Shown: in pieces, positions 406 to 27,930 of the stretch | Layout: the number at the start of each line of letters is the position of its first letter | Position numbering within the stretch: the first letter of the stretch is position 1 | From: Phaeosaccion multiseriatum | Taxonomy: Eukaryota > Protista > Ochrophyta, other classes | Assembly (NCBI GenBank): GCA_965112735.1 | Contig: OZ218963.1 | Span: forward strand, 2,728,001 to 2,792,000 | Reading direction: 5' to 3' | Length of the DNA: 64,000 nucleotides | Notes under the pieces: generated by a model | Seen by the model: only the letters and a program-made list of their open reading frames with translations | Databases searched by the model: none | Told to the model about the DNA's origin: nothing | Position numbers and translations under genes: made by a program

Positions 406-600
406 TGTCGAAACTACCGACAGCTAGCCTCAAAGCCAAGCTAGAGCAGAGCAGAAACTGAAGCAAGCACCCGGAAGCCAGCCCACACGCAGGCTGCGCT
501 TCCTTTCTTTATTACTGATGTACCGTCTCGTTGGCCCGTTTTCCGGCCGTTACACTACTGATTGGGTCCCCAAGGGACCCCAACTAGGCCACTTCTAACA
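406..600 (-). repeat. Family A 3' LTR (195 bp)
   Basis: tgtcgaaac...cttctaaca; homologous copies at 27747-27930 and, inverted, at ~28839-29014. Confidence 0.92.
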
Positions 601-638: not shown

Positions 639-3249
639 TCAGAAGCCGAGATGCGAGCGATAGAATTGCGTCTCGTGCGCCAGCCCGCTGCCCCACTTCT
701 CATGTTGCCGCAGACGGATCGTGCTTTCCCGTTTAGACATATGCCCTCTTTTGACATTCACTCCTGGATCAAGGGCAGTGTGCGGAAGGGCTTTCTCGAA
801 CGCCTCTATGGCCTTGGCGTGTTCCCGCTCCAGCCACCACTCAGCCCATTCCCAGGTCTGGAAAGTGCCGCCGTCCGCCACCGCCCACCGCACGTTATAC
901 TCTCGCCGCAGTGGCAGCCCCGTGGCTTTGCGCCAGCGGAACTTCACAATCCTCGCCAGCGTGGGCACTTTCCCCTCACTCACCTCGTCCAGCTCTAAGC
1001 TACGCTGCTCCTGCATTGCGCTGGTAGCCCACTGAGGAGAGCACCAACGGATATGATACCTGGCGAACCCTTCCGGGAGACCGAAGGGCCGCTCGCTCAC
1101 CCCATCGATGAACGGCTTCGTCAAGTCTCTGTGGCACGCCCGTTGCAGCTGCTCCACACCATTGCCGCGCACCCGTTTCATAGACAGATACACTGCGCTG
1201 CGCTGCATGACCTGATAGTGCTCTTCACTCACCCGCCCATGCTGAGCACAGTAGGCCCCCAGAGATGGCCAAGGCAAGACTGTATAAGGACCATCCCACG
1301 AATGCTGCAGAGCCTTGAGTTGCGCTGACGGGGGCCCTTCGAGCTCTTCCCCTTCTTGCTGGGCGGCGGCACCAGGACGATACAACATCACCTTGGTTCC
1401 GGGTCGCAGGGGCGTCGGCCAACGGCGTGGCTGAGGCGTTCTTCAGCTGCAATCTCCCGTGGTAGTCGCAGCGCCTCGCATTGACCACCGCCCCAGCAGC
1501 AGCCAGACGTGCCCGCAGTTCGTGGACCCATGCCGAGGCAGACGAAAACGACCCGTCCTCCACTAGCGCCGGAAGCATCGCCTGTAGAGGCACCGGGGGG
1601 TGCCGACCGAACAAGGCGTAGAATGGCGCCATCCCCGTGCTCTCCTGCGAGCGGCAGTTGTACGCATAGGTGAGCCCGGCGACGTAGTCTGGCCACTGCT
1701 GCATCTGTGACTCCACGGTCGTCGCCAACATGTCCTTGATCGTGGCCATGAAGTGCTCCACCTGCCCATTGGCCTGTTGGTGCATCGGCGTCGTGAACAC
1801 TTGCGACGCCGATAGAACCCGCATCACATCGCCCATGAGCGCACTGGTGAACTGCGAGCCTTGATCACTCACCAGCACTGGGGGCACACCCAGGGTGGTG
1901 ACGACGTGCCGCACGAAGGCCCGAGCAATACCTTCCGCCGTATAGTCCTGTGCCCTCAAAGGCACCACCACTGTCCACTTCGTGAACCAATCCTGAAACA
2001 CCAAGAGGTACTCCTCACCGCCCATGCCCATAGGAAAGGGGCCAGCCACATCAGCGCCCATGACCGCCCAAGGTCCATCCACCTTGGAAATGGACGACAG
2101 CGGCACAGGCTTTGGCTGCCGGCGAGGAGTCTTGCGTGTCTGACACGCCAGACAGGAGCGGGCCCAATACAGCGCATGTGCATTCATCTTCTCCCACCAT
2201 ACGCGCTCTTGCAGCGCGTCTAGCATACGTCCCGGGCCTTGGTGCCCGCCTGCGATGGCATCGGTGTGGGCGGCATGCAGCAAGGCTGGCCGCATCTCCT
2301 TGGGCACACATACTTGTAGCCGAGTGTGCCGCACCCGCCACCGAAAGCCCCCAGGAGCCCACTTACGCATCAAGAGCCCGTCCTCATCCACAAAGAGCTC
2401 ACCCCCACCTGCATCCACCACGCCGCCGGTGGGCCCAGCCTGAACACGACGACGGAGTGCTTCCAGCTCCGCATCAGCCCGCTGCGCACGCACCCACCAC
2501 GCGGCCTCGACATGCAGACTGCCACCCAAAGCTCCAGCCGCTCGTCTGTGCGCCGCGGCAGCAGGCACCGTGCCTGGTAGAGACCACCCAAACTGTCGCT
2601 CTGCCTCTCGTCGATGCCCATCAAGCTCGCGCTGCAAGGTGGACTCCTGCTCCACCGGCTCCTTGGAAACTGAATCCACTGCATCCTCAGCTTCATTACC
2701 TGCATCCCCTGCTTCTTCCGTGACCAGTAGATCTGCCGTACCAGGCTCCGACGGCGACTCCGCAGCAGGCGGCTCCCTAGGGGGGGTGATGCGGCCCTCC
2801 TCCGTAACAAGCTCCTCACCCTCGGTGGCACCAGCAACGGCAGCTGGACACACCTCCGAGAGCAGACGAGACGCATCCTCCTCAAGCTCGGCCTCCCATG
2901 CAGCCCACGCATGAGCGGCCGCGGCACCCGTTTGCTGAGCCTCCGCTGGTGTGCACATCGAGAAGTAGTCACGCGACACCTGACGGACTTGCTTCCATGG
3001 CAGCTCGATCATGGTATCTAGATGACTGGCCAACGCGCCCACCACCTTCCGCTTGCGCTTATAAGTCCGCGTGAACAGCTCCACCATCTGCATCATTGTC
3101 TCCCACGAGCACTGCAGTTTGAATTGCAGTTTGGCCAGGTCGAATACCTCCAACGTCTTGGAGTGGACACCAAAGATGTAGAGCGGTGACACGTGGTCGC
3201 GATCGCCCCAATAACCAACCGCGGCCTGCATGAACCTGCCGACTTGCAT
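639..3249 (-). pseudogene. A1 pol C-terminus: unknown domain, integrase and chromodomain (frameshift near 1430)
   Basis: HHCC (HTDAIAGGH..CLAC), DDE (GADVAGP, VSDQGSQF, ANGQVE), GPY motif (WDGPY), chromo-like RIVKFRW..EYNVRW..TWE. Confidence 0.9.
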
Positions 3250-3262
3250 CTCCTCCTGCTCC

Positions 3263-3351
3263 TGTTAGAAGTCGTACTTTTGCTAGACTGATACCTGCCC
3301 TCTGAATTCAGACCGGGAGGTATCAGTCTAGCAAAAGTACGACTTCTAACA
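3263..3351. mobile_element. Solo 89-bp palindromic family C unit
   Basis: tgttagaagtcg...cgacttctaaca hairpin flanked by CTCC TSD (3259-3262 / 3352-3355); removing it rejoins two same-frame pol ORFs. Confidence 0.92.
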
Positions 3352-5224
3352 CTCCGCAGGGGTGTGAGCAGGGCTCATCGCGCTAAGCTCCACCCCCGGG
3401 CCACCATGGACGAACGGCACACACTCCGCCATGCGAGGCCAGAGGCGGAGGAGCGCCGCAGCGTCAGCAAACGCGTACTCCCGTTGAGCGGCGGACAGCG
3501 GCCGCTTCGTCCAATCTGTGGCCCGCTCCTCCTTGCTAAGGTGTTGCTCCAAAAACATGCTGACAAGGTCCTGGAGTCCGATGAACTGAGCATGTTCGGG
3601 GCACACGCGCTTAAAGAGGTCACTGGTGTCCACCAAGTTGACGATGTGCTGGACATGCTCCGCGAGCGCCGGCCATCGGCCCAGGGCGCGTTGGTCGTGA
3701 CTCCAGTGGTGAGCCAGCTTCACAATCGAGGGTTCGGCCCACAGGTCCCGCAACGCTTGCGCCAGTACCATCATCCCCCCCGCCTTCTGAAGCGCGTCTA
3801 GATCAATCAAGAGCCCATAGTCACGCGCCACATCCGGCAGCGGCCCAACCTGCACGGCCAATTGCAGCAGCGACGCGCGCCGTCGGTGACGCGCCCACTC
3901 CGAATCCATGGCGACCACTTTGGCTGTGCGCAACTGAGTCGACAGAGCCTGCACGTGCCTCGGCGTAGACACGTACGTGCACCTCACTGCGGAAATGTGG
4001 CTCACAAATGGGGGCATCTGACCCGGCTGCCAGGCCTCTATCACAGCCTTCTTCACACCCAGCTGAGGTGCTCGCGTAGGCTGCCATCCGCATTGCTGGA
4101 GACGCTGTGTCCAAGCACGCCGAGCAGTATCCCTGCGTGACTGCGTCGCCGACAAGTCCACCTCTGCAGTCTGCCAGGCTTGTAGGGCCTCCGCTCCGCT
4201 CTGCTGCTGGTGGTGGCACCGTTGCTGCTGTTGCCGGGCCGTCACGGCAGGCACAGGAATAGGAAGGCGTGTGTCGGCTTCGCCCTGCAGCTGTTGCGCC
4301 ACTGCGAGAAAGCGAAGCAGTGCTCCCTCCGTTGGCTCCTCCCAATGAAGGCTGCACTCGTCCCCTACCATCTCCACCAGGTTCAACTGCACCCCCATCG
4401 AAGCACACCAGGTGTGCAAGGGCGACGGCCACTCGCACGCAACCATGGCCAAGTCTACCCCCGCATGCGTCGCCCACTCCTGCACCGGAAGCGCGTTGCG
4501 AGAGAGGCAGTCAGGCACCACCACTTGCTTCCCGGGACGATGCACAAACTGCAAGTGGTGCGTAGAGAGCCGCTCGTACCATCTGAACAGCTTGGAATTG
4601 GTATCCTTGTGCCCAGCCAACCACAACAAGGGCTGATGGACCGTCACCACTGTGGTGGGGTAGTGGCAGATGTACATGGCCAGTTTACGCACACACCACA
4701 CCACTGCCAGCAGCTTCAGCTCAGTGCTGCTCAGTCGCGCCTCCGTCTCCGTGGTAGCCCGACTGATGAACGTCACCACACGCTCCTCCCCGGTCGCATC
4801 TTTCTGAGAGAGCACTCCTGCTAACCCTTCCGTCGAGGCGTCGGTGCTCAGGGTGAAAGTCGTCGCTGGCCCGTACTCCGGAAAGGCCAGTGCAGGGGAA
4901 GACAACATGTTGGCAACGAGTCCATCCCAAGCTGCATCGTGCGAGGCATTCCAGGCGGTGCTCACGTCGACGCCCTTACGCAGTAGCCCATTGAGGGGCC
5001 GCACTTTGCGCGCAAACTCCGGAATGAAACGGCGAAAGTAGCTGAGCATGTCAATGAAACGCCGCACCTGCTTAACTCGATTGACGCCACCATCCTTCGC
5101 AAGCAACCTCAACGGCTTGACCAGCTCTTGCACCACCGCATGCTTGGCCGGGTCTGTGCGCACCCCATTCTGATCCAGCAAATGCCCGCAGAACCGCACC
5201 TCCGGTGCACCCAATACAGCCTTA
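3352..5224 (-). pseudogene. A1 pol: RT thumb, RNase H and DEDDy 3'-5' exonuclease
   Basis: FCGH, YFRRFIPEFA, TDAS..GLAGVLSQ, PDCLSR; exonuclease motifs AMDSEW, HDQRAL, DWTKRPLS..QREYAFAD. Confidence 0.92.
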
Positions 5225-5425
5225 TGTAAAAGCGACTTAAGTCGCTTAGACAAGTGGTAACACTCGATATATTATACGGAATGGAACCCGTTTGCAAGCC
5301 CTGCTGCTAGGCTCTCCTTATACCAAGATCACCTTTTCTGACGTCCTCTTGCCCTCAGAATCTACGTAATATAGGACACGCCGACCATTGACTTATGGTC
5401 CTTCTCACTCTGAGGCCTTCCAACA
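5225..5425 (-). repeat. Family D 3' LTR
   Basis: tgtaaaagcg...ccttccaaca; contains the perfect 18-bp palindrome AAGCGACTTAAGTCGCTT (5230-5247). Confidence 0.93.
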
Positions 5426-5660
5426 TCCCCAATGCCTATCCCGTAACCTTCCAACATCCCCAATGCCAACCCGCTTGCAAGCCCTGCTGCTAGGCTCTCC
5501 TTATACCAAGATCACCTTTTCTGACGTCCTCTTGCCCTCAGAATCTACGTAATATAGGACACGCCGACCATTGACTTATGGTCCTTCTCACTCTGAGGCC
5601 TTCCAACATCCCCAATGCCTATCCCGTAACCTTCCAACATCCCCAATGCCTATCCCGTCT
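5426..5660 (-). repeat. Tandem partial duplication of LTR D and its PPT region
   Basis: Partial LTR copy at ~5469-5609 plus repeated ccttccaacatccccaatgcc units. Confidence 0.85.
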
Positions 5661-5684
5661 CTGCGACCACCACCACCGCAAGGT

Positions 5685-7877
5685 CTAGAACCCCAAATGT
5701 TGTGCCGTCTCCGCAGCGATGCCCATCCCCCACTTCTCGTGCAACATGGCGCGCACGGTGCGCTCTCGTTTAGACCGCTGCCCACGCTTGCGCTGCACGC
5801 TCGGGTCCAACGCCCCTGGCGCCAAAGAGTCCTCGAATGCCTCTATTGCCGCCCTCTCTCCGCGCCGCAAGAGCCAATCGTCCCACTCCCACGTCTGATA
5901 ACTGCCGCCCTCCCGTACAGCCCAACGTACACAGTACTCACGCCGGAGGGGCTGTCCTGTGGCCTTACGCCACCTCATCTTCACTATCCGCGCCAGCTCA
6001 GGCGCCAGCCCTATCCCAACCTCGTCGTCGGTCACGCTACGCTTCTCCTGCAGTGCACTAGTACCCCAGTGGGCTGAGCAGTAACGGATGTGGTATCGAG
6101 CGAACCCATCTGGTAGTCCTTGCGGCTGGCCACTCACCCCATCAACGAACGGCTTGGTGAGGTCCCTATGGTACGCCCCTTGCTTGAACTCCACTCCCCC
6201 GCCTCTGACCCTCGGCACATCCAGATACACCGTGCTGCGGCGCATCACCGCGTAGTGCTCGTCGTTGAGTACGCCACCATGTCGCGCCTGGAAGGCCTGC
6301 TGTGTGGGCCAAGCCAGGACTTGGAACGGTCCGTCCCAAGCATGACTCAGCGCCTTGAGCGTCAGTGCCTTCTGCTCCTCCATGGCCTCACCCTCCTCCT
6401 GCGCCGCCCCCCCTGGACGGTACAACCACACCTTAGTGCCAGGAGGCATCGGCGCTGGCCAGCGACGCTCACGGTTCTTGAGCTGTAGCCTGCTGCGGTA
6501 CTCCTCGCGCCTGCCCGTCACCACCTGCGCCGCCGCTGCCATCCGCGCCCTCAGCTCGTGCACCCATGCCGAAGGCGTCTCGAACGAGCCGTCCTCCTCG
6601 AGGGCAGGCAGCATCGCTTGAAGTGGAATTGGGGGGTGTCGACCGAAGAGAGTGTAGTACGGTGAGAGGCCTGTGGTCTTGTGAGCCCTGCAGTTGTACG
6701 CGTACGTGAGTGCGGGAACATACTCAGGCCACTGCTGCATTTGGGCCTCCACTGTCGTCGCCAGCATGTCCTTCATCGTGGCCATGAAGCGCTCCACTTG
6801 CCCATTGGCTTGCTGATGCATCGGCGTAGTGAAGACTTGTGATGTCTGGAGTACGCGCAGCACATCGGCCATGAGAGTGCTCGTGAATTGCGACCCCTGA
6901 TCACTGACCAGCACCTTGGGCGCCCCCAGCACCGTCACTACGTGCCGCACGAATGCCCGAGCAATGCCCTCCGCTGTATAGTCCTTGGCGCACAATGGCA
7001 CCACCACTGTCCATTTGGTGAACCAATCTTGAAACACCAAAATGTACTCCTCCCTCCCCATGGCCATGGGGAGAGGTCCTGCCACGTCAGCACCCATAAC
7101 CGCCCATGGCCCATTCACAGCCGCCGATGATATGGACGAGAGCGGAACCTGTGGAGGTCGCCTCCGTGGTGTCTTGCGTGTCTGGCACGCAAGACATGAA
7201 CGGGCCCAGTACAGCGCATGCCCGTTCATGGAGGGCCACCACACTCGCTCCTGCAGCGCGTCCAGCATCCGCCCTGGCCCGTGATGGCCGCCTGAGACCG
7301 CATCGCCGTGCGTGGCATGCAGTAGAGCAGGCCTGAGCGCCTGGGGGACGCAGAGCTGCAACCTCGTTCGCTCTACTCGCCACCGTCGCCCCCCGGGGGC
7401 CCACTTGCGGCGAAGGACTCCATCGCCATCGAGAGAGAACTCCCCCCCGCCCGCATCGAACACCCCCTCGCCCGGGGGGGCTGCCAAGACCTTCTGACGC
7501 CACCCCTCCAACTCAGCGTCCTGCTGCTGCGCCTTCACCCACCACGCGGGCTGGTAAGTCCGAGCCCCATGCAATATGCGAGCTGCGCACGACTGCGCAC
7601 CCGCTGCTGGGGGAACACCAGGGAGGGACCACCCAAATTGCCGCGTAGCAGCCTGCCTTGCGGACTCCACGTCTGCCAGCGCTGCTGCCTCGCTCGCCGC
7701 AGCCGCATAGCCGTCGGTGTCAGCCGCTGGAGTCTCTCCATCCTCTCGCCCCTCCATCACCTTGGGCGTGCCACCAACTGTGAGTCCGCCGCTGCCTCCT
7801 CCCCCGCCGCCTCCTCCGCCTCCTCCTCCTCCGCCGCCTCCTCCGCCTCCTCCTCCGCCTCCTCCGTCGCCGCCGCC
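5685..7877 (-). CDS. Family D integrase with GPF motif and chromodomain
   Basis: HGDAVSGGH..CLAC, GADVAGP, VSDQGSQF, NGQVERF, WDGPF, EYCVRW..TWE. Confidence 0.92.
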   Translation of the reverse strand, partial: GGGDGGGGGGGGGGGGGGGGGGGGGGGGSGGLTVGGTPKVMEGREDGETPAADTDGYAAAASEAAALADVESARQAATRQFGWSLPGVPPAAGAQSCAARILHGARTYQPAWWVKAQQQDAELEGWRQKVLAAPPGEGVFDAGGGEFSLDGDGVLRRKWAPGGRRWRVERTRLQLCVPQALRPALLHATHGDAVSGGHHGPGRMLDALQERVWWPSMNGHALYWARSCLACQTRKTPRRRPPQVPLSSISSAAVNGPWAVMGADVAGPLPMAMGREEYILVFQDWFTKWTVVVPLCAKDYTAEGIARAFVRHVVTVLGAPKVLVSDQGSQFTSTLMADVLRVLQTSQVFTTPMHQQANGQVERFMATMKDMLATTVEAQMQQWPEYVPALTYAYNCRAHKTTGLSPYYTLFGRHPPIPLQAMLPALEEDGSFETPSAWVHELRARMAAAAQVVTGRREEYRSRLQLKNRERRWPAPMPPGTKVWLYRPGGAAQEEGEAMEEQKALTLKALSHAWDGPFQVLAWPTQQAFQARHGGVLNDEHYAVMRRSTVYLDVPRVRGGGVEFKQGAYHRDLTKPFVDGVSGQPQGLPDGFARYHIRYCSAHWGTSALQEKRSVTDDEVGIGLAPELARIVKMRWRKATGQPLRREYCVRWAVREGGSYQTWEWDDWLLRRGERAAIEAFEDSLAPGALDPSVQRKRGQRSKRERTVRAMLHEKWGMGIAAETAQHLGF

Positions 7878-8249
7878 TGTTACGATATAAGGCATCCCAA
7901 TATGCCTTCAGTATAATCCGAACGTTTGGATAATACTGAAGGCATATTGGGATGCCTTATATCGTAACAAAAGGTGGGTTCGGTGAGCCCTACCTTCACA
8001 CCGGGGGGTTGGTGCTACCGAAACGTTCGACCCTAAATACTGTCCCTCATCCCCACCAGTTTTCCGTGCTTTTTCCCTAGGGTACGACCCTCTGGTAACC
8101 CCCCTCGGGAAATATCATTTTTTTCCTCTTCCTCAAGTAGGACTCGAACCCCTCTTTTGTTACGATATAAGGCATCCCAATATGCCTTCAGTATTATCCG
8201 AACGTTTGGATAATACTGAAGGCATATTGGGATGCCTTACATCGTAACA
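7878..8249. mobile_element. Family E mini-element (372 bp): two 92-bp palindromic terminal units around a 188-bp core
   Basis: Units tgttacgat...atcgtaaca at 7878-7969 and 8158-8249; interrupts D pol; only a 2-bp (CC) duplication is visible. Confidence 0.88.
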
Positions 8250-11184
8250 CCTTCAACTCTCCCTCCGCCTCCGGCACCACCCGCGCCGTCACCGTCGCCT
8301 GCTGCGGCTGCTGCGATGGTCGCGGTCGTCGCACTCACCGCGTCCACCGTCGCTGCACCCACCACGCCCGCTGCCTCGACAGCGGCAGGGATGTCCCACG
8401 CCACACCTTGGGTTTGCCACTGCTGCTGGGCCGCTGTGGGGGTTACCATGGTGTAGTAGCCGCCGGTATCCGCAGCGATGGCACTCCACGTCTTCTCGAT
8501 CATTACCGCTCGAGGTAGCGAGAGCTTGCCACGGCGCCGCGCCGCCGCTGGCCGATAGCGCGCCCTGAACTGCTCCACCTCTGCCATGAGCTCCGTCCAG
8601 GTCCACTGGGGGTGGCGGTAAGACAGAAGAATCAGATCAATCATCTCCACTGACTTAGCGGTCGCTGAGAAAATGAAAAGTGGGCTGGCGTGCTCCCGAT
8701 CGGCCCAATACCCCACCCCAGCAGAGACGAACTGCCCTGCTTGCATTTCAGCGCGCGTCACACCCGACACCCCGCTATCCACTGCGCTCACTTCCACCGC
8801 CGATGGCACCGGAACGGCACAAGCCCGCATCTGCGGCAGCAACTGTAGTAATGCTGCCACATCGTCGAAAGCATAGCTGAGCTGAGCCGCAGTGAGCTCC
8901 CGCTGAGTCCAGTCAGTCTTCTGCTCCTCCTTGCTCATAAAACGCTGCAGGAACATACTAACCAGGCCCGCTAAGCCAATGGGACGGCAGTGCTCTGGCC
9001 ACACCTCCTTGAATAGATGCGTCGTGTCGACCAAGTTGGCGATGGCCCACACATGTGGCGCCAACGCCGGCCACTTCCCTAGTGCACGCTGGTCGTGACG
9101 CCAGTGATGCGCCAGCTTCATGATTCCCCCGTCGCCCCACAGCTCACTCAGCACCGCCACCAGAGCCTCCATCCCACCATTGCCACTCAAACTGTCCAAA
9201 TACACCCAGAACCCACAATCACGCTCCGAATTGGCGACGCCGCTATACTGGACACCCAATTGCAGCAGCGACGCCGGACGAGGAGGGGTGCGTATAGCCC
9301 ACTCCGAGTCCATGGCCACCACTGTCGCCTCCCGCAGTGCCGCCCGCATGGCCCATACCTGCTCCTCCGTGCGTATGTACGTGCACCGAGCTGCTGGCAC
9401 GTGACTGCGAAACGGCGGCAGCTGAGACCACTCCTCTATCACCCGTTTCTTCTCGTTGATGTGGGACAGGGTCACTGGAGCCCAACCACATTGCCGCATC
9501 TGCTCCACGTGCTGCACCCGAGCCGAACCTAAGCCGTCTGGCGTCTCGACCGCCACACTGTCCACGCACATCGCCTCCAAACCTGCCGACGCCTGCTGTC
9601 GCGCCGTGACAGGCGAGAGTCCCTCCAAAGGCACTGACTGAGCCGCCACCGCCTCCCCTTGCAACTGCTGCACAGCTGCAACAAACCGCAGAACAGCCCC
9701 CTCCACCTGATCCTCCCACTCTAACGCGAGTGTGTCACCTACCACATCCACCAACGCCACCTCCACTCCCACCGCATCACACCACTCAGTCACTGGCAAG
9801 GGGTCGCGTGACAAGCAGTCAGGCACCACAAGCTCCCGCCCTGGCTTGTGGACAAACTTGAGATGATGCGCAGAGAGCCGTTCATACCATCGAAAGAGCT
9901 TTGAGTTGGTGTCTTTTTGTGTCGCCAGCCACAGCAAGGGTTGGTGGTCCGTCACCACAGTGCAGGGAGGCAAATGTACATGCTCAATTTGCGCACACAC
10001 CAAACCACCGCCAAGAGCTCGAGCTCCGTACTGCCGAGCCGAGCCTCCGTAGGGGTAGTGGCACGACTGATGAACGTAACGACTCGCTCCACCCCTTCGG
10101 CATCCCGCTGCGATAGCACACCCCCTAAGCCGTCTGCTGAAGCGTCGGTGCTCAGCGTGAACACCGATTCCGAGCCGCAGTGAGGGAAGGCCAACGCTGG
10201 AGAGCGGAGCAGGTCCTCGATGAGCCCCTCCCACGCCGCGTCATGCTTCGGCCCCCACGCTGACCGCACGTCCACCCCTTTGCGCAAGAGCTCATTGAGC
10301 GGCCGCACCTTCATGGCAAACGCCGGAATGAATTTGCGGAAGTAGCTGAGCATGCCTACAAAACGCCTGACCTGTCGCACCTGATTGCTTGGCTGCGCGG
10401 TGGGCTTGGCTAGCGCTCGCACTGCTGCATACTTGGCTGGATCGGCCCGCACCCCCTCACTATCCACCAAATGCCCGCAGAAGCGCACCTGTGGTGCCCC
10501 CAACACCACCTTGCTCGGCGCCAGCTTGAGCTTGTGCTGCACCATCCTGCCGAGAACTTGGTCTAACTGGCCAATGTGCTGATCCACCGTGGCGGAGAAG
10601 ACCGCAATGTCGTCCACAAAGCACGCCACAAACGCCTGCAGGCCCTGCAAAACCGTGTTCATAAGGCGTACGAACGTGGCGGGTGCATTCTTCGCTCCCT
10701 GTGGCATGACCCGCCAGGCGTACGTGCCACTGTGACAGACAAAGGTAGAGATGTCCTCGTCCTCCGTGGTGGCCATCGGCACGTTGAAGTAGCCGGACAT
10801 GATGTCCATCACCGAAAAGACCGTAGACCCCTGCATCTCCGCCAGCAAATCATCCACCACTGGCATGGCGGGCGCCTCCGTGCGGCACGCGTCATTGAGC
10901 TGTGACAGGTCACACGTCATCCGCACAATCGGAGTGCCGTCCTCGTGGCACTTGGTGTTGCCGTGCTCGTCCGTCTTCAACACGGCCATGAGAGGAGTGG
11001 CCCAGGCTGCTGTGCTGGGCCGGATGATCTCTGCCGCTAACATCTTGTTCAACTCAATCTCAATACCGCGGCGGACCGGAGGAGGGTAGCGCCGTGCCGC
11101 ACTCCGAATTGGCGGCTGCTTCGGGTCCAACAACGGAACACCAAACCGTCCCGAATCAGTGCGCGGCGTAGTAGTCGCTCCCAT
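8250..11184 (-). pseudogene. Family D pol: RT, RNase H, DEDDy exonuclease and unknown domain (frameshift near 9970)
   Basis: MPQGAKNAPATF, CFVDD, TDASADG, PDCLSR; AMDSEW, HDQRAL, DWTQRELT..QLSYAFDD. Confidence 0.92.
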
Positions 11185-14100
11185 CCACGCAGAATGCCGC
11201 TACTACTCGCTGCTTCAACACCACCACCAAGCCCCACCGCTGCGCTTCTGTCCAACCTTCATCACCGATGGTCATAGCGTGCATGTGCTGGGGCAGCTGC
11301 GCCTGGTAGAATGTGGCACGTGCCACTGCTGCTTGCGCCCGTCGCCGCTGCTGCTGCACACATTCACCACCTGCCAATCCTCCAACCTCCGCCCGCAGGA
11401 CACGACACTGCCACAATAGTCGCCGAATGGTGAGGAATAACTGCAGTGCTGCGTTCAGCTCCGTCTCCACACCGGCCTGCTTCAGCAACGAGTGACTGCT
11501 CCACATGGACAAGAGTTGCTCCAACCACCGGGCCACCACCACATCATCGACACCCTCGAGTCCCCCTTGCGTCTGCTGCACGTGTGGGCGTAAGAGCAGG
11601 AGAGCCGTAACTGCACCCACCTCCGCAGCCGCCAAGCACGTACGGAGCCGCTCCTGCCCACTCGCTGCAAGGCACGGCGCCCACTCACGCAGGATCAAGC
11701 TGTGAGCGGCCTCCCGTGTGCCCGCCTGCCGTCCATCACCCGTGCCACCAAGCGTCAAGGCACCATGCTCGTCGATAGCCCAGGTCGGGCCGTGCAGGCT
11801 GCCCGCCGTAGCCTCAACCTGCTGCCCCATCGCCACGTCATCCTGCAAGGTATGCAGAGTGGCCTGTGGAGACACCGTGGGTGGCACCACCTCCACCGCC
11901 CCAGTCACAGCGTCGCCAATTGAGGGCCCCCCGTCCACCGCTGCCACACAGACCTCGGACACGCACAGGGAAGGGGCACCTCCTCCTCCTCCTCCTCCTC
12001 CTCCTCCTCCTCCTCCTCCGCCTCCTCCTCCTCCTCCGCCGCCGCCTCCTCCGCCTCCTCCTCCTCCGCCTCCTCCTCCTCCTCCTCCTCCTCCTCCTCC
12101 TCCTCCTCCTCCTCCTCCTCCTCCTCCTCCTCCTCCTCCTCCTCCTCCTCCTCCTCCTCCTCCTCCTCCTCCTCCTCCTCCTCCTCCTCCTCCTCCTCCT
12201 CCTCCTCCTCCTCCTCCTCCTCCGCCGCCTCCTCCGCCTCCTCCTCCTCCGCCTCCTCCTCCTCCTCCGCCTCCTCCTCCTCCTCCACCACCACCACCTG
12301 TGCCTCCTCCAGCGGCGGCTGCGGCCGCCACGGCCCGTGCGTGTCGAGCCAAGATGCTAGGACCAGCAGTAAAAGGCCCCTCCACTGAGAGTGAGACGTG
12401 CCGCCGCGCTACCCGTAGACGCCGACCGAGCCCCAGCCGAGCAGGCCTGCATGGCCTGTGTTTGCCCGACTCCCTCGTCACGGGCCGCACTGCCTGCACG
12501 ACCGGAGCACGGACGGCTCCCAGAGCCACGGGCCCCAGCGGCACCGGGCGGAAAACATCCTCAGGCCCATCGACCAGATCGGAGGCCACTGCCTCGCGTC
12601 CCCAGCGCTCACGCAAAGCCACAGCCGCGAGCCACGCCTGTCGGGGCGCTCCGTCGTTGCCTCCTCCTCCTCCACCGTCGCCGCCTCCGCCATCTCCTCC
12701 TCCTCCTCCTCCTCCGTCTCCTCCAGCGCCACCTCCACCTGCGCCGCCTTCGCCATCTCCTTCTTCTACTCCTCCTCCTCCTCCGTCCCCGCCAGCGCCG
12801 CCTCCGCCGTCGCCGCCTCCTCCATCTCCTCCTCCTCCTCCGCCGGCTCCCCCAGCGCCACCTGAAGGCCACAAGGCAGCCACTCCACCGGTGCCTCCTC
12901 CTACTCCTGTGCCTGCGACGGCCGCTGCTGCACTTCCTCCACCGACACCACCACCACGCTCCTCGCCACCGACCACAGCACGAGACGCACCCCAGCGTGC
13001 CCAGCGACGCGGGAGCGAACGAAGGCCCCCGGCCGGCGTGCAAGGCGCAACAAGAGGAGCCGGCTCACATAACGCCACCTCCACCGCTGCTCGCCGATCC
13101 TCCTCCGCCAGCAGATACGTGCCCACGCCCACAGCCTGCCCAGGGACCACGACTATCGTCTCGTTGTGCTGATTGTGTATACCGATGCTCCACTGCTGCG
13201 TGGCACCGACCACGCACGCCGCACGACTCACCAGGACTTGCTCGTGGTTCAGCCACCACAACGCCTCCTGCTGCGCCTGCAACTGCCCGTGGGCACCCAA
13301 CTCCACACTGAGACGCCCTCCTGCGACACCCCCGTCCACCTCCAGCACGAGCGCGGCCTTGCCGCCCGGGGCGAGGCGAAGTGCCTCAGTCGCCAGCACC
13401 TGACACTCCCCCAAGCTGACAGCGGCCACGGCGATGGTGTCGTCGACCTCCGACCGCGGCTCCGACGACGGAGAACTCGCCTCCGTGGGGTGCACGTACA
13501 GCTGATGAACCTTGTGGTCAGTAACCGCCCCCACCATTGTGAGCACGTCTTGGCCAAAGATCAAGGGACGGGCGAGGTGCTCCACTACCCACATGGCCAC
13601 CACCGGCTGACACGTAGGCGTGAGGGCGATTTGCACCCACACCCGACCGAGCGAGGCTGAAGTAGCGGCCTGAGTCGTGGCGTACCGAACTGCCACTCGC
13701 TCCTCCGCCAAGTCCCGCACCTGAAAGACCCCTGCGGCGACGCCACGATCAAAGGTCGCACGTGAGGCACACGTGTGAGTGGCGCCGGTGTCCACCAAGG
13801 CCTGTACCGTGAGCGACACCGGAGCCCGTGACGGATGCTCGCGCAATTGAAGGGCAGACTGAAGCACCACCGATACCGTATGCCCACGCGGATTGACCGC
13901 CACCCCGGTACGCCCTGTCTGCTTAATCGCCAGAGTCATCTCAATCTGCTTCCGCCTCGCCTCCCGCCGCAGATACGCTGCCCCTGTATCGTCAGTAACT
14001 GAGAGCGCCGCCATCTCCACCCTCGCTCGCTGCACGCACACCTCGCAGGGCTCCCGCTCCGCACTCAGAGAGCACCCACTGACGCACTCCCTCTCCACCG

Positions 14101-15589
14101 GGTCTGCAGCTGGTGCCAGGAGCGCGGCTGCTCGACACGCCTTCGCCGTCGGAGACAATGCAGGAAGAGCACCACTACACTCCGGCAGCAGGGTGACGTG
14201 CTCCGCGAGCAGCGCGTCGAAATCATCGCAATCGTCGACCAGCAGAGCAGAACCCCCTGCCGGCGCGACTGAAGGCCCAGCCCCCACCCCCGAAGGCACG
14301 CGACGGCCAGCCGGCGGAATCACAAACGTTTCGGCCGCCCACGTCAGCACCCGCGCGTGCGCGGCCGCGCACTCTGCCGCCCAGCGCTGTGCAGCTTGCG
14401 TAGCTGTCTGTGCGTCGCTGATCACCCACTCCTGCGCCGCCCACACCCACTCACGAAGCAGGCTGGGGTCACGGAGAGACTGTTCCCATGGAGGGACCCC
14501 GAGCGGCAGAGCCATGACCCCCCGGGGCACGCCAGCGGCCGCAGACGCAGGGCAGCGGAACACATGCCCTTCACGCCACCGCCGCATGACCACAACCTGT
14601 CGGGCCCTCCAGACCCGCCGCTGTGCCTCCGCCGTCGCCCCCACCAGCCCGCATGCCGGCCCCTGTGCAGCGGCCTCAACCTCTGCCTGCAGCTCAGCCC
14701 CAAAGAGCGCTGCTGCTATTGTTGCATCGGCTGCTGCAACAGTCTGTCGAGCCTCGTTCCCGTTGTCCGCCACCGTCTCCGTCTGCTCCTCCTTAGCCTC
14801 CTCCGCCTCTTCCTCCGCCTCCAGCGCCTCCGACATTGGTTTCTCCTCCGCCTTCGCCTCCTCCTGCCCCTCCGGTGCCTCCGCCGTCACTGCGGCAGCT
14901 GCCTCCTCCGCCTCCTCCTCCGCCTCCTCCTCCTCCTCCGCCTCCTCCTCCTCCTCCTCCTCCTCCTCCTCCTCCTCCTCCTCCTCCTCCTCCAGCGCCG
15001 CCGACATCGGTTTCTCCTCCGCCTGCGCCTCCTCCTGCCCCTCCTGTGCCTCCGCCGTTACTGCGGCAGCTGCCTCCTCCTCCTCCTCCTCCTCCTCCTC
15101 CTCCTCCTCCTCCTCCGCCTCCTCCTCCAACGCCTCCGCCATCTGATTCTCCTCCGCCTTCGCCTCCTCCGTCCCCTCCTGTGCATCCGCCATGACTGCG
15201 GCCGCCTCCGCCTCCTCCTGCTCCTCCGCCTCCTCGTCCACCTCCGCCTCCTCCGCCTCTGCCTCCGCCTCCACCGCCACCAACGTGAGCGTGGCAGCCC
15301 CCAACCCGCCAACGGCCGCACCCTCGACTGCACCCCTAGCGGCTGGGAGCCCCACGTCACAACGTAGGAACGTGGCCGCCCGAGCCCGTGCGGCGTCAGC
15401 TGTTGCGCGCAGCGTGAGCGCTTGCTGCTTCCGCCGCCCTATGCGCAGCATATGATTCGGAAGGCGTGGCTCACGGCAAGCTCGCTGCCGCCACAACGGC
15501 ATGCCCCCTACCGCACCCCACACCGCCGCCTCCTCCTCCTCCTCCTTCGCCTTCTCCGCCTTCTGCTCCACCCCATCACCGTCAACCAA
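11156..15589 (-). pseudogene. Family D pol N-terminus: acidic repeats, aspartic protease, dUTPase-like segment
   Basis: ALVDTGATH...LIFGQD protease motifs; poly-E/poly-G tracts; frameshifted relative to RT. Confidence 0.8.
11980..12290. repeat. (CCT)n/(GGA)n trinucleotide expansion within D pol
   Basis: About 100 CCT units with CCG interruptions. Confidence 0.95.
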
Positions 15590-16285
15590 CCCCTACCGCT
15601 GTCAACGGGCCTACCGCTGTCAACTGTGTGAATCTCGCCCCTCGGGGAGGGAGGAAGTGTTGCTAGCAAGCTGAAGGAAGACGATACACAAGCTCGATGA
15701 GGTGTTACATTATGTGATTTGTTACCCTCTCTAACTCCCGTATCCACTTCCCTACTACTTGCCGTTACCACCCCCCCCCGCCCCAGGGCTCCGGCCCCCG
15801 CTGCTACCGACTCTGTAGCGGCGGGGCATCGTCACAACAGACCACCCGCTTCCTCTGCCTGCACGCCCCTAACCATCTCGGAGATGGAGTCGAAATCCGG
15901 GTCCTCCGCCAGCTTCCGCTTCAATTGCTTCATCAACGCGCGCTTCAGGCCCGTGGTCGGGGGCACCACATTACACCCAAAACGGAAGTGCCCTGTTTGA
16001 CCACACCCATAGCAGCGATCCCCCGGCGCGTGCAGAGCCGGCACCACGGCCCCCACAGTCTGCGGGGGGGCACCCGATGCCGCCATGGAGGTGGTAGCGG
16101 CAGCAGAAGCCGGCAGATCCACGGCGTTGATGTCCATGCTCTCCCTCCTAGGCCTGCCACCCCCACCGCCACCACCACCACCGCCACTACCGCCACCCCC
16201 GCTACGACCCCCACGGCCGCGCACCGACAACTTGCTGTGATCCATGATCACCTGCTCGAACTCCTGTGGGCACTTCCGCTCCAAC

Positions 16286-18008
16286 TGTTGAAAGTCAGTA
16301 TTATGTCAATGGCCCAGGCCCAGGCAAATACGGTGAGAAACGGTGCGTGGCCCGTTTCTCACTCACCTCCCAGCAGGTTGGTCGTTTAGGATGGCTCACG
16401 GATAAAGCTAATAGAGACAAGGCTGGCTGCCAGGCTGGCTTTGGGGTTGCTATTACCTTATCCATGCGGCTACTCCTATCCTAGGTGGAGAGCAACGTGA
16501 CTCTTTACAACCCCAAAGAATCCCGAAGGCAGCTGACCTTGGCCAAGAGGCTCAGGCAGCAGCTCGGTAGCTTTGAGTTTGCCGGGAGCGGTGCCTTACA
16601 GCGGGCACGGCTTTCGAGTGTGGCAGCTGCACGGATGTTGCTGTTACACGGAAAATGCTGCTGGAGCTTGGTGGGCAGTGGAGATGGAGAATTGCCGGGA
16701 GCGGTGCCTTACAGCGGGCACGGCTTTCGAGTGTGGCAGCAGCACGGATGTTGCTGTTACACGGAAATTGCTGCTGGAGCTTGGTGGGCCGTGGAGATAG
16801 AGAATTGCCGGGAGTGGTGCCTTAGACAGCGGGCATGGCTTTCGAGTGTGGCAGCTGCACGGATGTTGCTGTTACACGGAAATTGCTGCTGGAGCTTGGT
16901 GGGCCGTGGAGACAGAGAACTGCCGGGAGTGGTGCCTTAGACAGCGGGCATGGCTTTCGAGTGTGGCAGCAGCACGGATGTTGCTGTTGCACGGAAATTG
17001 CTGCTGGAGCTTGGTGGGCCGTGGAGATAGAGAATTGCCGAGAGCGGTGCCCTACAGCGGGCACGGCTTTCGAGTGTGGCAGCAGCGCGGCTGTTGCTGT
17101 TGCACGGAGTTTGGCGGGAGACAGAGAAGGATACTCGCAAGGCTGCTTTAGGGACTGTCTGGGTGCCTTGTAGGCACACCAGTAAACACTTGAGCAGTCA
17201 GCATTAGTGGTGCGCAACGAGGCTTTGGCAACGCTGGTGGCGAGTAGGAGTGGAGATAGAGAATTGCGCGGGTGAGTTTGAGTCATGGGATGTTCTCATC
17301 CGTGAGCTTGTGTGGGTGAGTTTGAGTCGTGGGGTTTTCTCACCAATACAGGAGGGTGTGTGTTGGAGGAGCGGTCGCACACACCTGGGTGAGTTTTGCA
17401 TATTTCTCATCCGTTTTTATTGGAAGCAACATGGAGGCTTTTGCTACAAGTCGAGCTTTAGTAGGCGAACCCGCTTTGAGTTGCGTGGGGACACGCAATA
17501 GTTTAGTTCAGGGGGATGTTAGAAGTGCAGGGATGGCTGACGGGGATGTTGAAAATCAGTATTATGTCAATGGCCCAGGCCCAGGCAAATACGGTGAGAA
17601 ACGGTGCGTGGCCCGTTTCTCACTCACCTCCCAGCAGGTTGGTCGTTTAGGATGGCTCACGGATAAAGCTAATAGAGACAAGGCTGGCTGCCAGGCTGGC
17701 TTTGGGGTTGCTATTACCTTATCCATGCGGCTACTCCTATCCTAGGTGGAGAGCAACGTGACTCTTTACAGTTTCCCACAAAACTGTAAAGAGTCACGTT
17801 GCTCTCCACCTAGGATAGGAGTAGCCGCATGGATAAGGTAATAGCAACCCCAAAGCCAGCCTGGCAGCCAGCCTTGTCTCTATTAGCTTTATCCGTGAGC
17901 CATCCTAAACGACCAACCTGCTGGGAGGTGAGTGAGAAACGGGCCACGCACCGTTTCTCACCGTATTTGCCTGGGCCTGGGCCATTGACATAATACTGAC
18001 TTTCAACA
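16286..18008 (+). mobile_element. Non-autonomous LTR element B1 (LTR-internal-LTR-spacer-inverted LTR)
   Basis: 224-bp LTRs at 16286-16509 and 17547-17770, inverted copy at 17785-18008; CAAC TSD; no recognisable coding domain. Confidence 0.92.
16581..17125. repeat. ~114-bp minisatellite inside B1 (4 units plus a partial)
   Basis: Repeated gccgggag..ggctttcgagtgtggcagc..ggagaatt; B2 has 2 units plus a partial. Confidence 0.9.
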
Positions 18009-18704
18009 CAACATAGTCCCCAAGGCCGCCCAGGAATGCTGGTGCGTCACCGCCATGTTCACCTCCTGTAGGATGGAGTTGGTGAGCGACGTCTGACTGA
18101 TGCCCCTGCGCCGATGCATGGCTTGGGCCTCCAGAACCGCCATCCCCTCCTGATCCACGATGGCGGCCAGAGCCTCGCCGCCGACCTGCGCCAACAAGGC
18201 CCTTAGACCGTTAACCTGATACACCCCAGTCACCAGCTTGAGATTGGACTCCATGCAGCCCGTCAACTCGGACGTCACCAGGCTCCGTACCACCGGGGCT
18301 CTCTGCAGCTCGACCTTATGAAAGAACCGGAATAGCGCCCTCACGGCCGCGTGGTAGAAGCGCGGAGTGTCAGGTGCAGACAACTCCAAACGAACCTCGG
18401 TGTAGAAGTTACTCCGCTCCATCACCGCGAAACCCTCAGCCATGAGACGCTGCACCTCCACCTCCTGCTCTTCCTTCACCACCCCGTGCCGCATGTAGCC
18501 CCAGGACTCCTGCTGCTGCATCCACTCGGAGACGACCTCCAACGTGCCCCGGTGCGTCATGTCCCAGGTGAGCGTGGGCATGAGAGAGAGTTCAGCGGGC
18601 AAGCTCCGAATCGTCTGCACCCCCCCCCCCAGCACAGGGCCACCGGTCGGCAAGGCTTGGAGATGCAAACTGGACATCTGCTGCTGCAGCCCCAACATCT
18701 GAGT

Positions 18705-18905
18705 TGTAAAAGCGACTTAAGTCGCTTAGACAAGTGGTAACACTCGATATATTATACGGGATGGAACCCGTTTGCAAGCCCTGCTGCTAGGCTCTCCTTA
18801 TACCAAGATCACCTTTTCTGACGTCCTCTTACCCTCAGAATCTACGTAATATAGGATACGCCGACCATTGACTTATGGTCCTTCTCACTCTGAGGCCTTC
18901 CAACA
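18705..18905 (-). repeat. Family D 5' LTR
   Basis: Near-identical to 5225-5425. Confidence 0.93.
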
Positions 18906-20498
18906 CTTACTCGGCTCCAACTTGAGCTTGTGCTCCACCAACCGCGCAAGCACAGCATCCAAATGCTCCAGATGCTGCTCAACCGTAGCCGAAAACACAG
19001 CAATATCGTCCACAAAGCATGCCACATGCTCCTGAAGCCCCTTGAGCACCTTATTCATAAGCCGCACAAAGACTGCAGGCGCATTCTTCGCGCCCTGCGG
19101 CATCACTCGCCAAGCGTAAGTACCACTGTGGCACACAAAGGTGGATATGTCCTCTTCCGCTGCTGATGCCATCGGCGCATTGAAGTAGCCCGACATGATG
19201 TCCATCACCGAGAACACCTTGGAGCCGTGCATCTCTGCCAGCAGACCATCAATCACCGGCATCGCAGGGGCCTCCGTGCGACACGCATCATTCAGCTGAG
19301 ACAAGTCACACGTCATACGTACCACAGGCGTCCCATCCTCATGACACTTGGTTTTGCCAGCTGCGTCCGTCTTCAAGACCGCCATCAGCGGAGTGGCCCA
19401 GCTGGAAGTGCTGGGGCGAATGATGGCAGCCGCGAGAAGCTTGTCAATCTCAATCTCAATCCCCCGCCGCAAATGAGGAGGATACCGTCGAGCGGAGCTC
19501 CGAATGGGCTGCTGATTCGCATCCTTCAGTCCCCACTCAAAGAAGAGAGTATCCGTCCGACCGTAGTCACCAGGCCTCTGACAGAATGCTTGCGACCGAG
19601 CGCGAAGGATCGCCACCAGTCCCCAGCGTTGCACCTCCGTCCAGGCACCGTCGCCAATCGTGATAGCGTGCAGGGGCGACGGTAGCTCCCTGAGCCAGAA
19701 CTGAGCCCGCTCCGTAGTGAGCTTGGCACGGCGCCGCTGCTCCACCACAAGCTCTCCTGCATCCCACGACTCCACTCCACCACCAAGACAGCGACTCTCC
19801 TGCAGCACCGCTCGCAATTGGATAAGGAGCAGCAGCGCATTGGTCATATCCTGCTCCACCTTCTCCTGCTGCTGTAATGGGCGACTAGACCACAACGACA
19901 AGAGCTGTTGGGCCCATGCTGCCACAGCAACGTCCCCAACGCCGCTCAGACCCGTGCCAGCGGCTTGGTGTACATGGGGGCGCAGGAGCAGTAGCGCGGT
20001 CACAGCCCCTTCCTCCGCCGCAACCAAGCACTCGCGCAGACGTCCATACACTCGCTCTGACAGGTGAGGATACCACTCCTTGATCAACTGCACTCCTGCC
20101 ATCAGAGTCCCACCAGACGTGTCACTCTGACTACCGAGTCGCAAGGCACCATCCGCATGCAGTACCCACCCATCACCGCGTAGGTCAGTCAATGATGTGC
20201 CCACAGCCGCCGACGATGAACCTGCCTCGGACCGTAGTGGCGGTTCCTCCGACGCCACTGACGACGCCGCCCGTGTCGCAGGCCTGCTGGTGGAATCATC
20301 AGCCACCGCCACGTGGTGGACCTGCAGCTGGCCTGTACGAGGCGGTCGGAGCTCCTGCAACTGTGTCTGACGGCGTCGCGCTACCGCCGCCGGAGCCACC
20401 TGCTGCTGCACCACATTGGACCGCTGAACCTGCTGAGCTGCCGACGAATCCGCTCGCTTAAAGAGCTCTTCCCGCTGGGCCTTGTGCCGTCGCTGCAA
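18906..20498 (-). pseudogene. A1 pol: RT fingers/palm
   Basis: SSWATPL, MPQGAKNAPAVF, CFVDDIAVFS. Confidence 0.92.
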
Positions 20499-20501
20499 TG
20501 C

Positions 20502-23500: not shown

Positions 23501-24150
23501 GCTGCTGCTGCTGCTGCTACTGCTCGACTGCGGAAGCCGCTGGCGCAGCCTCCTGGTGCGCGCCCTCCACGACTACCTCTACTGCACGCTGCGCCTGCTG
23601 CTGTACCGCCGTCATCTCCGTGTGCTCACCAGCAACGACTGCATCCGGGCCGTCAGTGCCCCTCGACTGCTCGACCACAGAGCGTACCACAGGACCCGGC
23701 TGCTGCTCTAGCTGCCACTCCGGCTGCTGGCGCTGCGGCTGCTGCGGCTGCCGCTCCGACGCTGGCAGCTGCTCGACCGCGGACGGCGCAGCCAGGCACA
23801 GCCTCTCTGTGCGCACCCTCCCCGACTACCTCTACTGCACGGCGCTGCTGCTGCGCCTGCTGCTGCGCCTGCTGCTGCACCGCCGTCACCTCCGTGGGCG
23901 CACTACCCACTACTGCATGCTCGGGACACCGATGCTGCGGCAGCTCTGCATGCTGCTGCTGCTGCTGATGCTGCTGCTGCTGCTGCTGCTGTTGCTGCTG
24001 CCGTCGTAGCCGAGCACGTCTGAGTCTGTTGCCACACCACATGTCACTCCGATAAACTCTGATGGGTGACTCCTGCTCTACACGACTAGCCTGACCGCTC
24101 CTACGCTGAGCGTCGGCATGGGGCAAAAACAAGATAGGTGCGAAGTACAT
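20502..24150 (-). pseudogene. A1 pol N-terminus: Q-rich repeats, aspartic protease, dUTPase-like segment
   Basis: ALMDSGC...IFLGQD; collinear with D ORF 11156-15589; several frame breaks. Confidence 0.78.
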
Positions 24151-24570
24151 TCATTATCTTCTACACTGCTCTTGCCTGCCCTCCCCCCCTGTTCCCCCAC
24201 GCCGACGCTATCCTCACGCGCTGCGGTCGTGGTCCCCAGGGCTGCTGGCCAAGCAGCCCCGGGGCACCGTCAGCCTTCGAACTTGAACCCGTCCTGCGCC
24301 GCCAGAGTGCCCGCCACCATTGCTGCCACGGATTCAGACATGTCGGACTCCTGGTGCAGCGCTCTGACCGCCTGCCGCCGCTGCACGCGACTCACAATGC
24401 CGAGCAGCTCCTCACGCGTAGCCGGGATGGCGTTGCATTCTATCCAGCCATGGCCGGCGCGGCGACAAGTCATGCAGTTAAATGGGGCATTGCCGTTGCC
24501 ACGCTGCTTGACCGAGCCGTGGAACAGCAAGGGCCGCTGCTGGGTGGGCGTGAGCCGCGGCTGCTGCGCC

Positions 24571-24608
<38 letters not shown>

Positions 24609-27746: not shown

Positions 27747-27930
27747 TGTCGAAACTACCGACAGCTAGCCTCAAAGCCAAGCTAGAGCAGAGCAGAAGCT
27801 GAAGCAAGCACCCGGAAGCCAGCCCACACGCAGGCTGCGCTTACAGGATTTACCGTCTCGTTGGCCCGTTTTCCGGCCGTTACACTACTGATTGGGTCCC
27901 CAAGGGACCCCAACTAGGCCACTTCTAACA
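27747..27930 (-). repeat. Family A 5' LTR, followed by a self-complementary PBS (27738-27746)
   Basis: Homologous to 406-600; PBS ACCCGGAAG is complementary to LTR 27810-27818. Confidence 0.9.

Follow-up and report, generated by a model that had tools for sequence, protein, structure and literature searches.

A DEDDy-type 3'-5' exonuclease domain between RNase H and integrase in the Pol of two Ty3/Gypsy families from Phaeosaccion multiseriatum

We analyzed 64,000 nucleotides of the Phaeosaccion multiseriatum genome (contig OZ218963.1, positions 2,728,001 to 2,792,000; this whole stretch is the window below), in which an earlier note had pointed to an exonuclease within the Pol polyprotein of a long terminal repeat (LTR) retrotransposon. 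The segment is a complete DEDDy (DnaQ-like, PF01612) 3'-5' exonuclease domain with predicted activity, and in a Ty3/Gypsy-type Pol it occupies an in-frame position after RNase H and before integrase. On the sequence evidence the feature is real and ancient within its lineage, which comprises two diverged element families – here called A and B – that are both represented in the window.

The whole feature is encoded on the minus strand, which the finding as first noted had left unspecified. Open reading frame (ORF) 3346..5253(-) encodes the C-terminus of reverse transcriptase (RT), then RNase H (RH), and then a stretch with VVAMDSEWA, SLLQLA, HHWSHDQRAL and DWTKRPLSAAQREYAFAD; every exonuclease motif that had been quoted is thus present, in frame after RNase H. 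Pfam places RT_RNaseH at residues 130-230 of this ORF and DNA_pol_A_exo1 (PF01612, '3'-5' exonuclease') at residues 427-609, or nt 3427-3975, within a few bases of the position first proposed. The frame is kept in the next ORF, 1225..3249(-), which contains Integrase_H2C2 and rve, the domains of integrase (IN). Three copies of the exonuclease domain matched PF01612 with E-values of 1.6e-21, 1.5e-20 and 1.4e-14 (77.4, 74.1 and 54.7 bits, against a cut-off of 23.6), the first of these being the family A copy in the window.

Residues D65 and E67 (Exo I), D135 (Exo II), and Y208 and D212 (Exo III) were invariant in an alignment of 58 sequences that included the best matches from 1.84 billion protein representatives. 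An AlphaFold2 model of the domain (predicted local distance difference test score, pLDDT, 86.9; predicted template modelling score, pTM, 0.84) has an RNase H-like alpha/beta exonuclease fold. The top Foldseek matches in the PDB were the EXO domain of Nibbler (7jw2, E 1.5e-11), Escherichia coli RNase D (1yt3), T. brucei Rrp6 (4nlb) and WRN (2e6l), each with a probability of 1.00 and with template modelling (TM) scores by target of up to 0.80. The top structural match in the ESM Atlas was MUT7 (TM 0.73), and weak sequence matches to solved structures were to Rrp6, RNase D, NanoRNase C and mut-7. Profile match, catalytic residues and predicted fold therefore agree on a DEDDy exonuclease of the RNase D/WRN/MUT-7 type, as the earlier note had read it.

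Copies, selection and age of the domain

The window's two copies are both dead – the family A element is split by a family B element and interrupted by a stop codon from an 89-bp insert, and the family B element is frameshifted – though the exonuclease domains of both are untouched. Taken alone, dead copies would fit a neutral passenger, namely a recently trapped and decaying host fragment, or a mis-assembly. Across the genome, which is GC-rich (67.1 Mb, 22 contigs), however, we found more than 27 exonuclease-bearing copies on 10 contigs. A genome-wide domain search gave at least 19 family A matches with 95-100% amino acid identity and about 10 family B matches with 56-58%, and the exonuclease lay at a fixed distance in all 16 family A copies with full RT and RH.

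Both families include an intact element with identical LTRs (Table 1), and both are apparently recently active. The intact family A element consists of a 619-aa ORF1, a TGA codon, and then an open 3274-aa ORF2 in the same frame that encodes Pol (G000:C1:1293547-1303368); the intact family B element has an open Pol frame of 3199 aa. The domain is thus not confined to decayed copies, a possibility that the earlier note had allowed for. In both long frames the Pfam domain order is RVT_1, RT_RNaseH, PF01612, Integrase_H2C2 and rve, which together with the order in the window bears out the proposed location between RNase H and integrase. Upstream of RT we observed a weak gag-asp_proteas match and a DTG motif, and family A has TG..CA LTR ends, a target-site duplication of 4 bp (CACA) and, ahead of the 3' LTR, a run of purines. 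By these sequence features the lineage is a Ty3/Gypsy (Metaviridae-type) LTR retrotransposon with the order PR-RT-RH-Exo-IN (PR, protease; Exo, exonuclease), the class being assigned from the Pfam signatures PF17917, PF17919 and PF17921.

Alignment of families A and B delimits an exonuclease module of about 340 aa, at about residues 2150-2500 of the intact family A Pol, comprising a conserved pre-exonuclease block, the domain itself and a conserved post-exonuclease block. A Gln-rich, indel-prone linker parts this module from RNase H, and an acidic or Gly-rich low-complexity spacer parts it from a conserved N-terminal extension of integrase; linker and spacer are plausible protease-accessible regions. 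Pfam at E-values up to 1 gave no matches in either linker, the 1560-aa N-terminal region, the C-terminal 383 aa or ORF1. ORF1 and the family A Pol share one frame and are parted by a single TGA followed by C (L031:5545-5547; G000:C1:1293544-1293546), an arrangement that suggests production of family A Gag-Pol by stop-codon read-through, as in Tj1.

Every scorable copy (18 of family A, 9 of family B) retains the D-E-D-Y-D residues, and in none does the domain contain a stop or an indel. Substitutions within each family were counted after masking the misaligned ends of copies, with the commonest codon in each column as the counting reference. Family A had 23 non-synonymous and 29 synonymous substitutions (neutral synonymous share 0.24, p 1e-6), and family B had 7 and 25 (neutral share 0.23, p 5e-11). 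Between families, the ratio of non-synonymous to synonymous substitution rates (dN/dS) was 0.21 for the exonuclease (59% amino acid identity), 0.07 for RT (80%), 0.05 for RNase H (81%), 0.09 for integrase (83%) and 0.28-0.31 for the linkers (44-53%). The earlier note had named neutral evolution across copies as the outcome that would count against the domain; both the counts within families and the ratio of about 0.2 between them instead indicate purifying selection. Judged from these substitution patterns, the domain is held by purifying selection in both families. Synonymous sites between A and B are saturated (dS about 1.8), and since the domain is common to both families it is older than their split and was already in their common ancestor.

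Retention of the catalytic residues bears on whether the domain works as an enzyme. It could instead be a non-catalytic module of Pol that binds nucleic acid, acts as a spacer or serves in dimerization, in the manner of the inactive Maelstrom and EXD1. Inactive DEDD domains with RNA-binding roles are known (PMC5408684), and the domain is less constrained than the core enzymes. Nevertheless, none of the five catalytic residues varies among 27 copies drawn from two families with saturated dS, or in the metagenomic fragment P0001 described below, whereas such residues are typically lost in inactive derivatives. We consider a non-catalytic role quite improbable.

The genome encodes 11 host PF01612 loci, and these match the transposable element (TE) domain only over the length of the Exo III motif (at best 47% identity over 45 aa); recent capture from the present host is excluded on these grounds. 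The next Gypsy-like RTs in the genome are only 31-34% identical to those of A and B, and PF01612 did not match them.

The stretch was also found in sequencing runs from three studies (two of 'organism A'; three runs of 'plant metagenome'), and contigs from the three studies bridge the junctions of RNase H with the exonuclease and of the exonuclease with the linker to integrase. The plant-metagenome contigs are 85-95% identical to the stretch: one joins 3073-3261 to 3364-3544 and lacks the 89-bp insert, and another covers 3890-4614, from the N-terminus of the exonuclease to the end of RNase H. Among the differences listed for these contigs within the domain, 14 were synonymous and 7 were not, and a few also occurred in the organism-A runs. 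Four of the organism-A runs (X1-X4) had a summed word depth of 5,000-40,000 over the element, against about 8 in the DNA run X5, and very short contigs (for example, window 2200-5224 in X1; library type unrecorded); they could be RNA, small RNA or enrichment libraries.

Copy number, open frames of about 3200 aa, an excess of synonymous change in a domain common to families with dS about 1.8, the lack of a host paralogue beyond the 45-aa motif match, and recovery from the runs of three studies together refute the reading of the domain as a passenger or artefact, to which we attach next to no weight.

Relatives and possible function

The best sequence match among the 1.84 billion representatives was P0001, a 186-aa metagenomic fragment with 46% identity; the remaining matches, and every cellular protein, were at most 37% identical. 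P0001 lies on a 917-bp contig that is too short for gene context, and similarity past its stop codon is weak and unconvincing. The matches from this collection were cellular-type relatives only; seventeen long ones were checked and proved to be Mut7-C, tRNA_edit, OTU, HRDC or exonuclease-only proteins, none of them fused to RT or IN. A word-index search with the whole 3274-aa Pol scored on the exonuclease region and with the 250-aa domain (E 1e-5) gave no matches, in an index that is insensitive here and says little. A scan of metagenome contigs gave six weak matches, none with RT or IN nearby, and a scan of viral contigs for the domain gave none.

In a phylogenetic tree the domains of A and B and P0001 form a clade (support 99/99) on a long stem. 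This clade is on the same side of a supported split (98/91) as all five Mut7-C proteins, though branching within that side is unsupported. The Mut7-C domain itself (PF01927) had no match in either Pol of about 3200 aa. Pfam likewise found no helicase domain in Pol, and no HRDC in the 350 aa following the exonuclease at E-values up to 1. In an AlphaFold2 model of the exonuclease with the post-exonuclease block, the latter had low confidence (pLDDT 30-76).

These relationships bear on the possibility that the domain serves counter-defence, with the exonuclease trimming or degrading host small RNAs (small interfering RNAs, Piwi-interacting RNA-like guides) or their precursors and thereby blunting silencing of the element, in the manner of Nibbler/MUT-7-type trimmers but turned on the host. 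Such a role would fit best structural matches to Nibbler EXO and MUT7 and a place on the Mut7-C side of the tree, and a mut-7-like silencing role has also been weighed for elements of rotifers (PMC5408684). The Pol lacks the Mut7-C domain, however, and the position of the TE clade within the Mut7-C side is unsupported and on a long stem. Moreover, if Gag-Pol is its only source, the domain would be confined to particles in small amounts and have poor access to cytoplasmic or nuclear small RNAs. We regard counter-defence as rather unlikely.

The LTRs provide further context. In both families, 9 nt at the junction of the LTR and the primer-binding site (PBS) are complementary to a segment within the LTR (positions 124-132 in A, 132-140 in B), and a TATA-like box lies about 30 nt upstream of this segment. 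The pairing involves different sequences in the two families (CTTCCGGGT in A, AAACGGGTT in B), and shuffled LTRs attained the 9-nt length in 73 of 5000 trials for A and 48 of 5000 for B. A tRNA-type TGG PBS was absent from the LTR/PBS junction of either family. Families A and B thus carry a signature like that of the self-priming mechanism known in Tf1/Tj1 (PMC4600332), and self-priming is predicted for them, with a predicted transcription start at the self-primer (about LTR position 124 in A and 132 in B).

Sequence and fold matches to RNase D and Rrp6 raise another possibility, that the element uses the domain to mature or trim its genomic RNA, or another structured RNA, at the 3' end for priming or packaging. 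RNA 3'-end processing was put forward by Arkhipova and colleagues for the rotifer DEDDy ORFs (PMC5408684, PMC6431247). Against this stand the absence of HRDC after the exonuclease, the lack of a confident fold in the post-exonuclease block, and a PBS that is not tRNA-like, which would make tRNA 3' maturation unneeded. An RNase D/Rrp6-like role of this kind seems improbable to us, and more so than counter-defence.

We favor a role in cis, to which we assign a probability of roughly 50%. Being translated within Gag-Pol, the domain would enter the particle together with RT and integrase, and there it would act on the replication intermediates of the element itself, at their 3' ends. One possible job is to clear nascent or finished cDNA of 3' nucleotides that were mis-incorporated or added without a template, as proofreading or as cleaning of ends before integration; an alternative is to trim the 3' end of the RNA self-primer. 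The linkers on either side of the exonuclease module are disordered and rich in indels, and the low-complexity spacer ahead of the integrase N-terminal extension suggests that the exonuclease module would either remain with RT-RH or be freed alone. Within this range, strict partnership with RT in proofreading, with mismatched 3' termini excised during cDNA synthesis, is on its own unlikely – a little below counter-defence in our estimation. The elements are 12.6-13.3 kb long, unusually long for their class, and almost all coding; together with the self-priming signature and, by analogy, the capture of a dUTPase at the same RT-IN position in retroviruses, this context would suit action in cis.

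Several points weigh against a role in cis. The fold cannot tell the substrate. MUT-7/Nibbler, RNase D and Rrp6 are mainly RNA 3'-trimming enzymes rather than DNA proofreaders, though WRN acts on DNA. No run was recorded as RNA among those in which the stretch was found. The exonuclease is less constrained than RT, RH and IN (A-versus-B dN/dS 0.21 against 0.05-0.09), which fits an accessory rather than a core role, and shared variants in the family A domain number 9 non-synonymous to 8 synonymous, a weak skew (p 0.03).

Layout of the window

Set against full-length copies from other parts of the genome, the window proved to hold one family A element at positions 406-27930 on the minus strand, split by a nested family B element. 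The blastn alignment to the intact family A copy breaks at 5224 and picks up again at 18906; the LTRs of the nested element (5225-5425 and 18703-18905) are 99% identical to each other. Linker 1, which joins RNase H to the exonuclease in the family A copy, consists of the Gln-rich stretch followed by the conserved pre-exonuclease block CGW..KK.VIE.W..P.F.SH..AARCTY. Coordinates are collected in Table 1.

Table 1. Positions of features in the window (counted from its first nucleotide) and, where a contig is given, of features elsewhere in the genome.
Feature	Position	Strand	Basis or description
Family A DEDDy 3'-5' exonuclease domain	3427..3975	-	PF01612; invariant catalytic columns; AlphaFold2/Foldseek
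Exo I D	3904-3906	-	Invariant alignment column
Exo I E	3898-3900	-	Invariant alignment column
Exo II D	3694-3696	-	Invariant alignment column
Exo III Y	3475-3477	-	Invariant alignment column
Exo III D	3463-3465	-	Invariant alignment column
3' LTR of family A copy	406-600	-	blastn with LTR of intact copy, 98.5%
Family A post-exonuclease conserved block, acidic low-complexity spacer and integrase	1225..3262	-	Pfam; A/B alignment
Family A integrase H2C2 zinc finger	about 2128-2307	-	PF17921, E 8.9e-16
Family A integrase core	about 1792-2055	-	PF00665, E 2.6e-6
89-bp palindromic mini-element	3263..3351	.	Missing from intact copy; sequence
Linker 1, RNase H to exonuclease, family A	3976..4563	-	A/B alignment, 53% identity with indels; no Pfam match
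RNase H domain of family A Pol	4564..4866	-	PF17917 RT_RNaseH, E 6.9e-27
Family A RT C-terminal part and RT-RH connection	4867..5224	-	Cut off upstream by nested family B element
Nested family B element (13.7 kb) in RT of family A copy	5225..18905	-	LTR pair; blastn to intact B copy; ORFs; Pfam
DEDDy exonuclease of family B copy	8825..9382	-	PF01612, E 1.3e-14, aa 285-470 of ORF 8237..10234; D-E-D-Y-D kept
372-bp palindromic insert in family B copy	7878-8249		blastn to intact B copy
Family A 5' portion: 5' LTR (27747-27930), ORF1, N-terminal Pol region, RT N-terminus	18906..27930	-	blastn to intact A copy, 90-96%
Intact family A element	C1:1291036-1303604		12,569 bp; 196-bp LTRs, 100% identical
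Intact family B element	C5:19488-32788		13,301 bp; 202-bp LTRs, 100% identical
Self-priming signature	G000:C1:1291036-1291260 (A, L031/L033); C5:19488-19720 (B, L032); window 27747-27930		9-nt complementarity at LTR/PBS junction

The only in-frame stop between exonuclease and integrase of the family A copy (3346-3348) is supplied by the 89-bp insert, which lies in the linker that leads to integrase, shortly after the exonuclease. The insert has TG..CA ends and a 4-bp target duplication (CTCC at 3259-3262 and 3352-3355), and it is missing from the contigs of other runs as well as from the intact copy. It is a near-perfect palindrome with at least 40 near-identical copies across the genome (e.g., C14:2618070, C5:4371202 and C4:4081015). 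Its first 10 nt (TGTTAGAAGT) are the same as the start of U3 in the family A LTR, and it may thus be a non-autonomous mini-element mobilized by the family A integrase. Mini-elements have hit the exonuclease-integrase linker of both window copies, the 89-bp element in A and a 372-bp element in B. Two more units of the 372-bp palindrome, in inverted orientation, sit between ORF1 and Pol in the family B copy on contig C5.

We made several further observations on the nested elements and their surroundings. An extra partial family B LTR lies in tandem with the 3' LTR of the nested family B copy (window 5468-5608), and an inverted 3' fragment of family A (plus strand, 96%) lies directly against the A copy's 5' LTR (window 27928-29014); both look like signs of recombination or of repeated insertion at the site. 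In the family B copy, the N-terminal part of Pol has poly-Gly (GGN) and poly-Glu/Ala tracts of very great length that repeat every 9 bp (window 11835-12400 and 14780-15300); these are expansions within the coding frame. ORFs in the right half of the window had no Pfam matches. Copies and fragments of both families, together with the palindromic mini-elements, crowd into about 0.4 Mb of contig 14 that includes the window (G000:C14:2.32-2.75 Mb) and accumulate again near contig ends (C5:8-30 kb, C11:9-12 kb, C10:8 kb, C3:6-10 kb and C9:9 kb), a clustering that looks centromere-like or subtelomeric.

Significance and comparison with known systems

Reverse transcriptases are the textbook polymerases without proofreading. 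A 3'-5' exonuclease that is under selection inside Pol, made in stoichiometry with RT and IN, in two diverged and apparently recently active families, offers a natural system for asking whether retroelements edit or clean the ends of their cDNA. If the domain does proofread, these would be the first reverse-transcribing elements with built-in proofreading, and the added fidelity might permit an almost fully coding genome of about 12-13 kb. Should the module work with RT, it would also interest enzyme engineers who seek higher-fidelity reverse transcription. With proofreading, the elements would have a parallel in nidoviruses, large RNA viruses whose replicase polyprotein contains nsp14 ExoN, a DEDDh proofreading exonuclease. 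The likeness is by analogy only – a DEDD-superfamily exonuclease within the replicase polyprotein of an unusually long genome – as ExoN is of the DEDDh type, partners an RNA-dependent RNA polymerase and is homologous only at the superfamily level.

Among cellular enzymes, MUT-7/Nibbler/EXD3 proteins provide the best structural match (7jw2 and 7jw6; MUT7 as given above), lie on the same side of the tree and share the DEDDy catalytic set. They differ in that the domain described here lacks Mut7-C, is fused to RT, RH and IN, and is only 18-21% identical to the Nibbler structures. RNase D, Rrp6 and WRN share the Pfam family, motifs and fold, but their HRDC or helicase domains are not found here.

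Two retroelement systems share other parts of the design. In the fission yeast Ty3/Gypsy elements Tf1 and Tj1, the PBS likewise has its complement in a part of the 5' LTR that lies downstream of a TATA-like box (PMC4600332). Tf1/Tj1 also resemble the present families in the stop codon that separates gag from pol (in family A here) and in copies that are clustered in a few regions, but the yeast elements are about 5 kb long and have no exonuclease domain. In non-primate lentiviruses a dUTPase lies between RT/RNase H and IN, forms part of Gag-Pol and is packaged (PMC2427051). This is also an accessory nucleic-acid-hygiene enzyme at the same Pol junction, though it has an unrelated fold, hydrolyzes dUTP rather than excising 3'-5', and belongs to vertebrate retroviruses. 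The present families indicate that the RH-IN junction takes accessory enzymes outside retroviruses too.

The closest precedent comes from bdelloid rotifers. Capture of DEDDy nucleases has been described for the LTR elements Juno and Vesta and for Athena/Terminon elements (Rodriguez, Kenefick and Arkhipova 2017, PMC5408684), which are treated also in PMC6431247 and PMC5718144, and a later paper terms DEDDy a well-known accessory domain of such elements (PMC6338049). The earlier note's remark that no described family with this domain was known therefore holds only in part: recruitment of DEDDy nucleases by LTR elements is already known, and the placement within Pol between RNase H and integrase appears to be the new part. 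In the literature we found no description of an RH-Exo-IN fusion in Pol; Repbase, Dfam, GyDB and eukaryotic genome collections lay outside this search. A Rotifera protein cluster also appears at rank 48 among the language-model neighbors of the domain, which is a hint only. The rotifer and present elements are alike in having an RNase D/WRN/mut-7-like DEDDy domain with essentially intact catalytic residues. In the rotifer elements, however, the exonuclease is encoded apart, by an ORF3 that follows pol, its motif is DEED, and its evolution within the genome was reported as near neutral (PMC5408684), whereas the present domain belongs to the Pol frame itself, flanked by RH and IN, has the canonical DEDD-Y residues, is under clear purifying selection and comes from a protist/alga. 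The two would represent independent routes by which LTR elements have recruited DEDDy nucleases, and a second recruitment of this kind would support the view that DEDDy activity has been repeatedly useful to retroelements.

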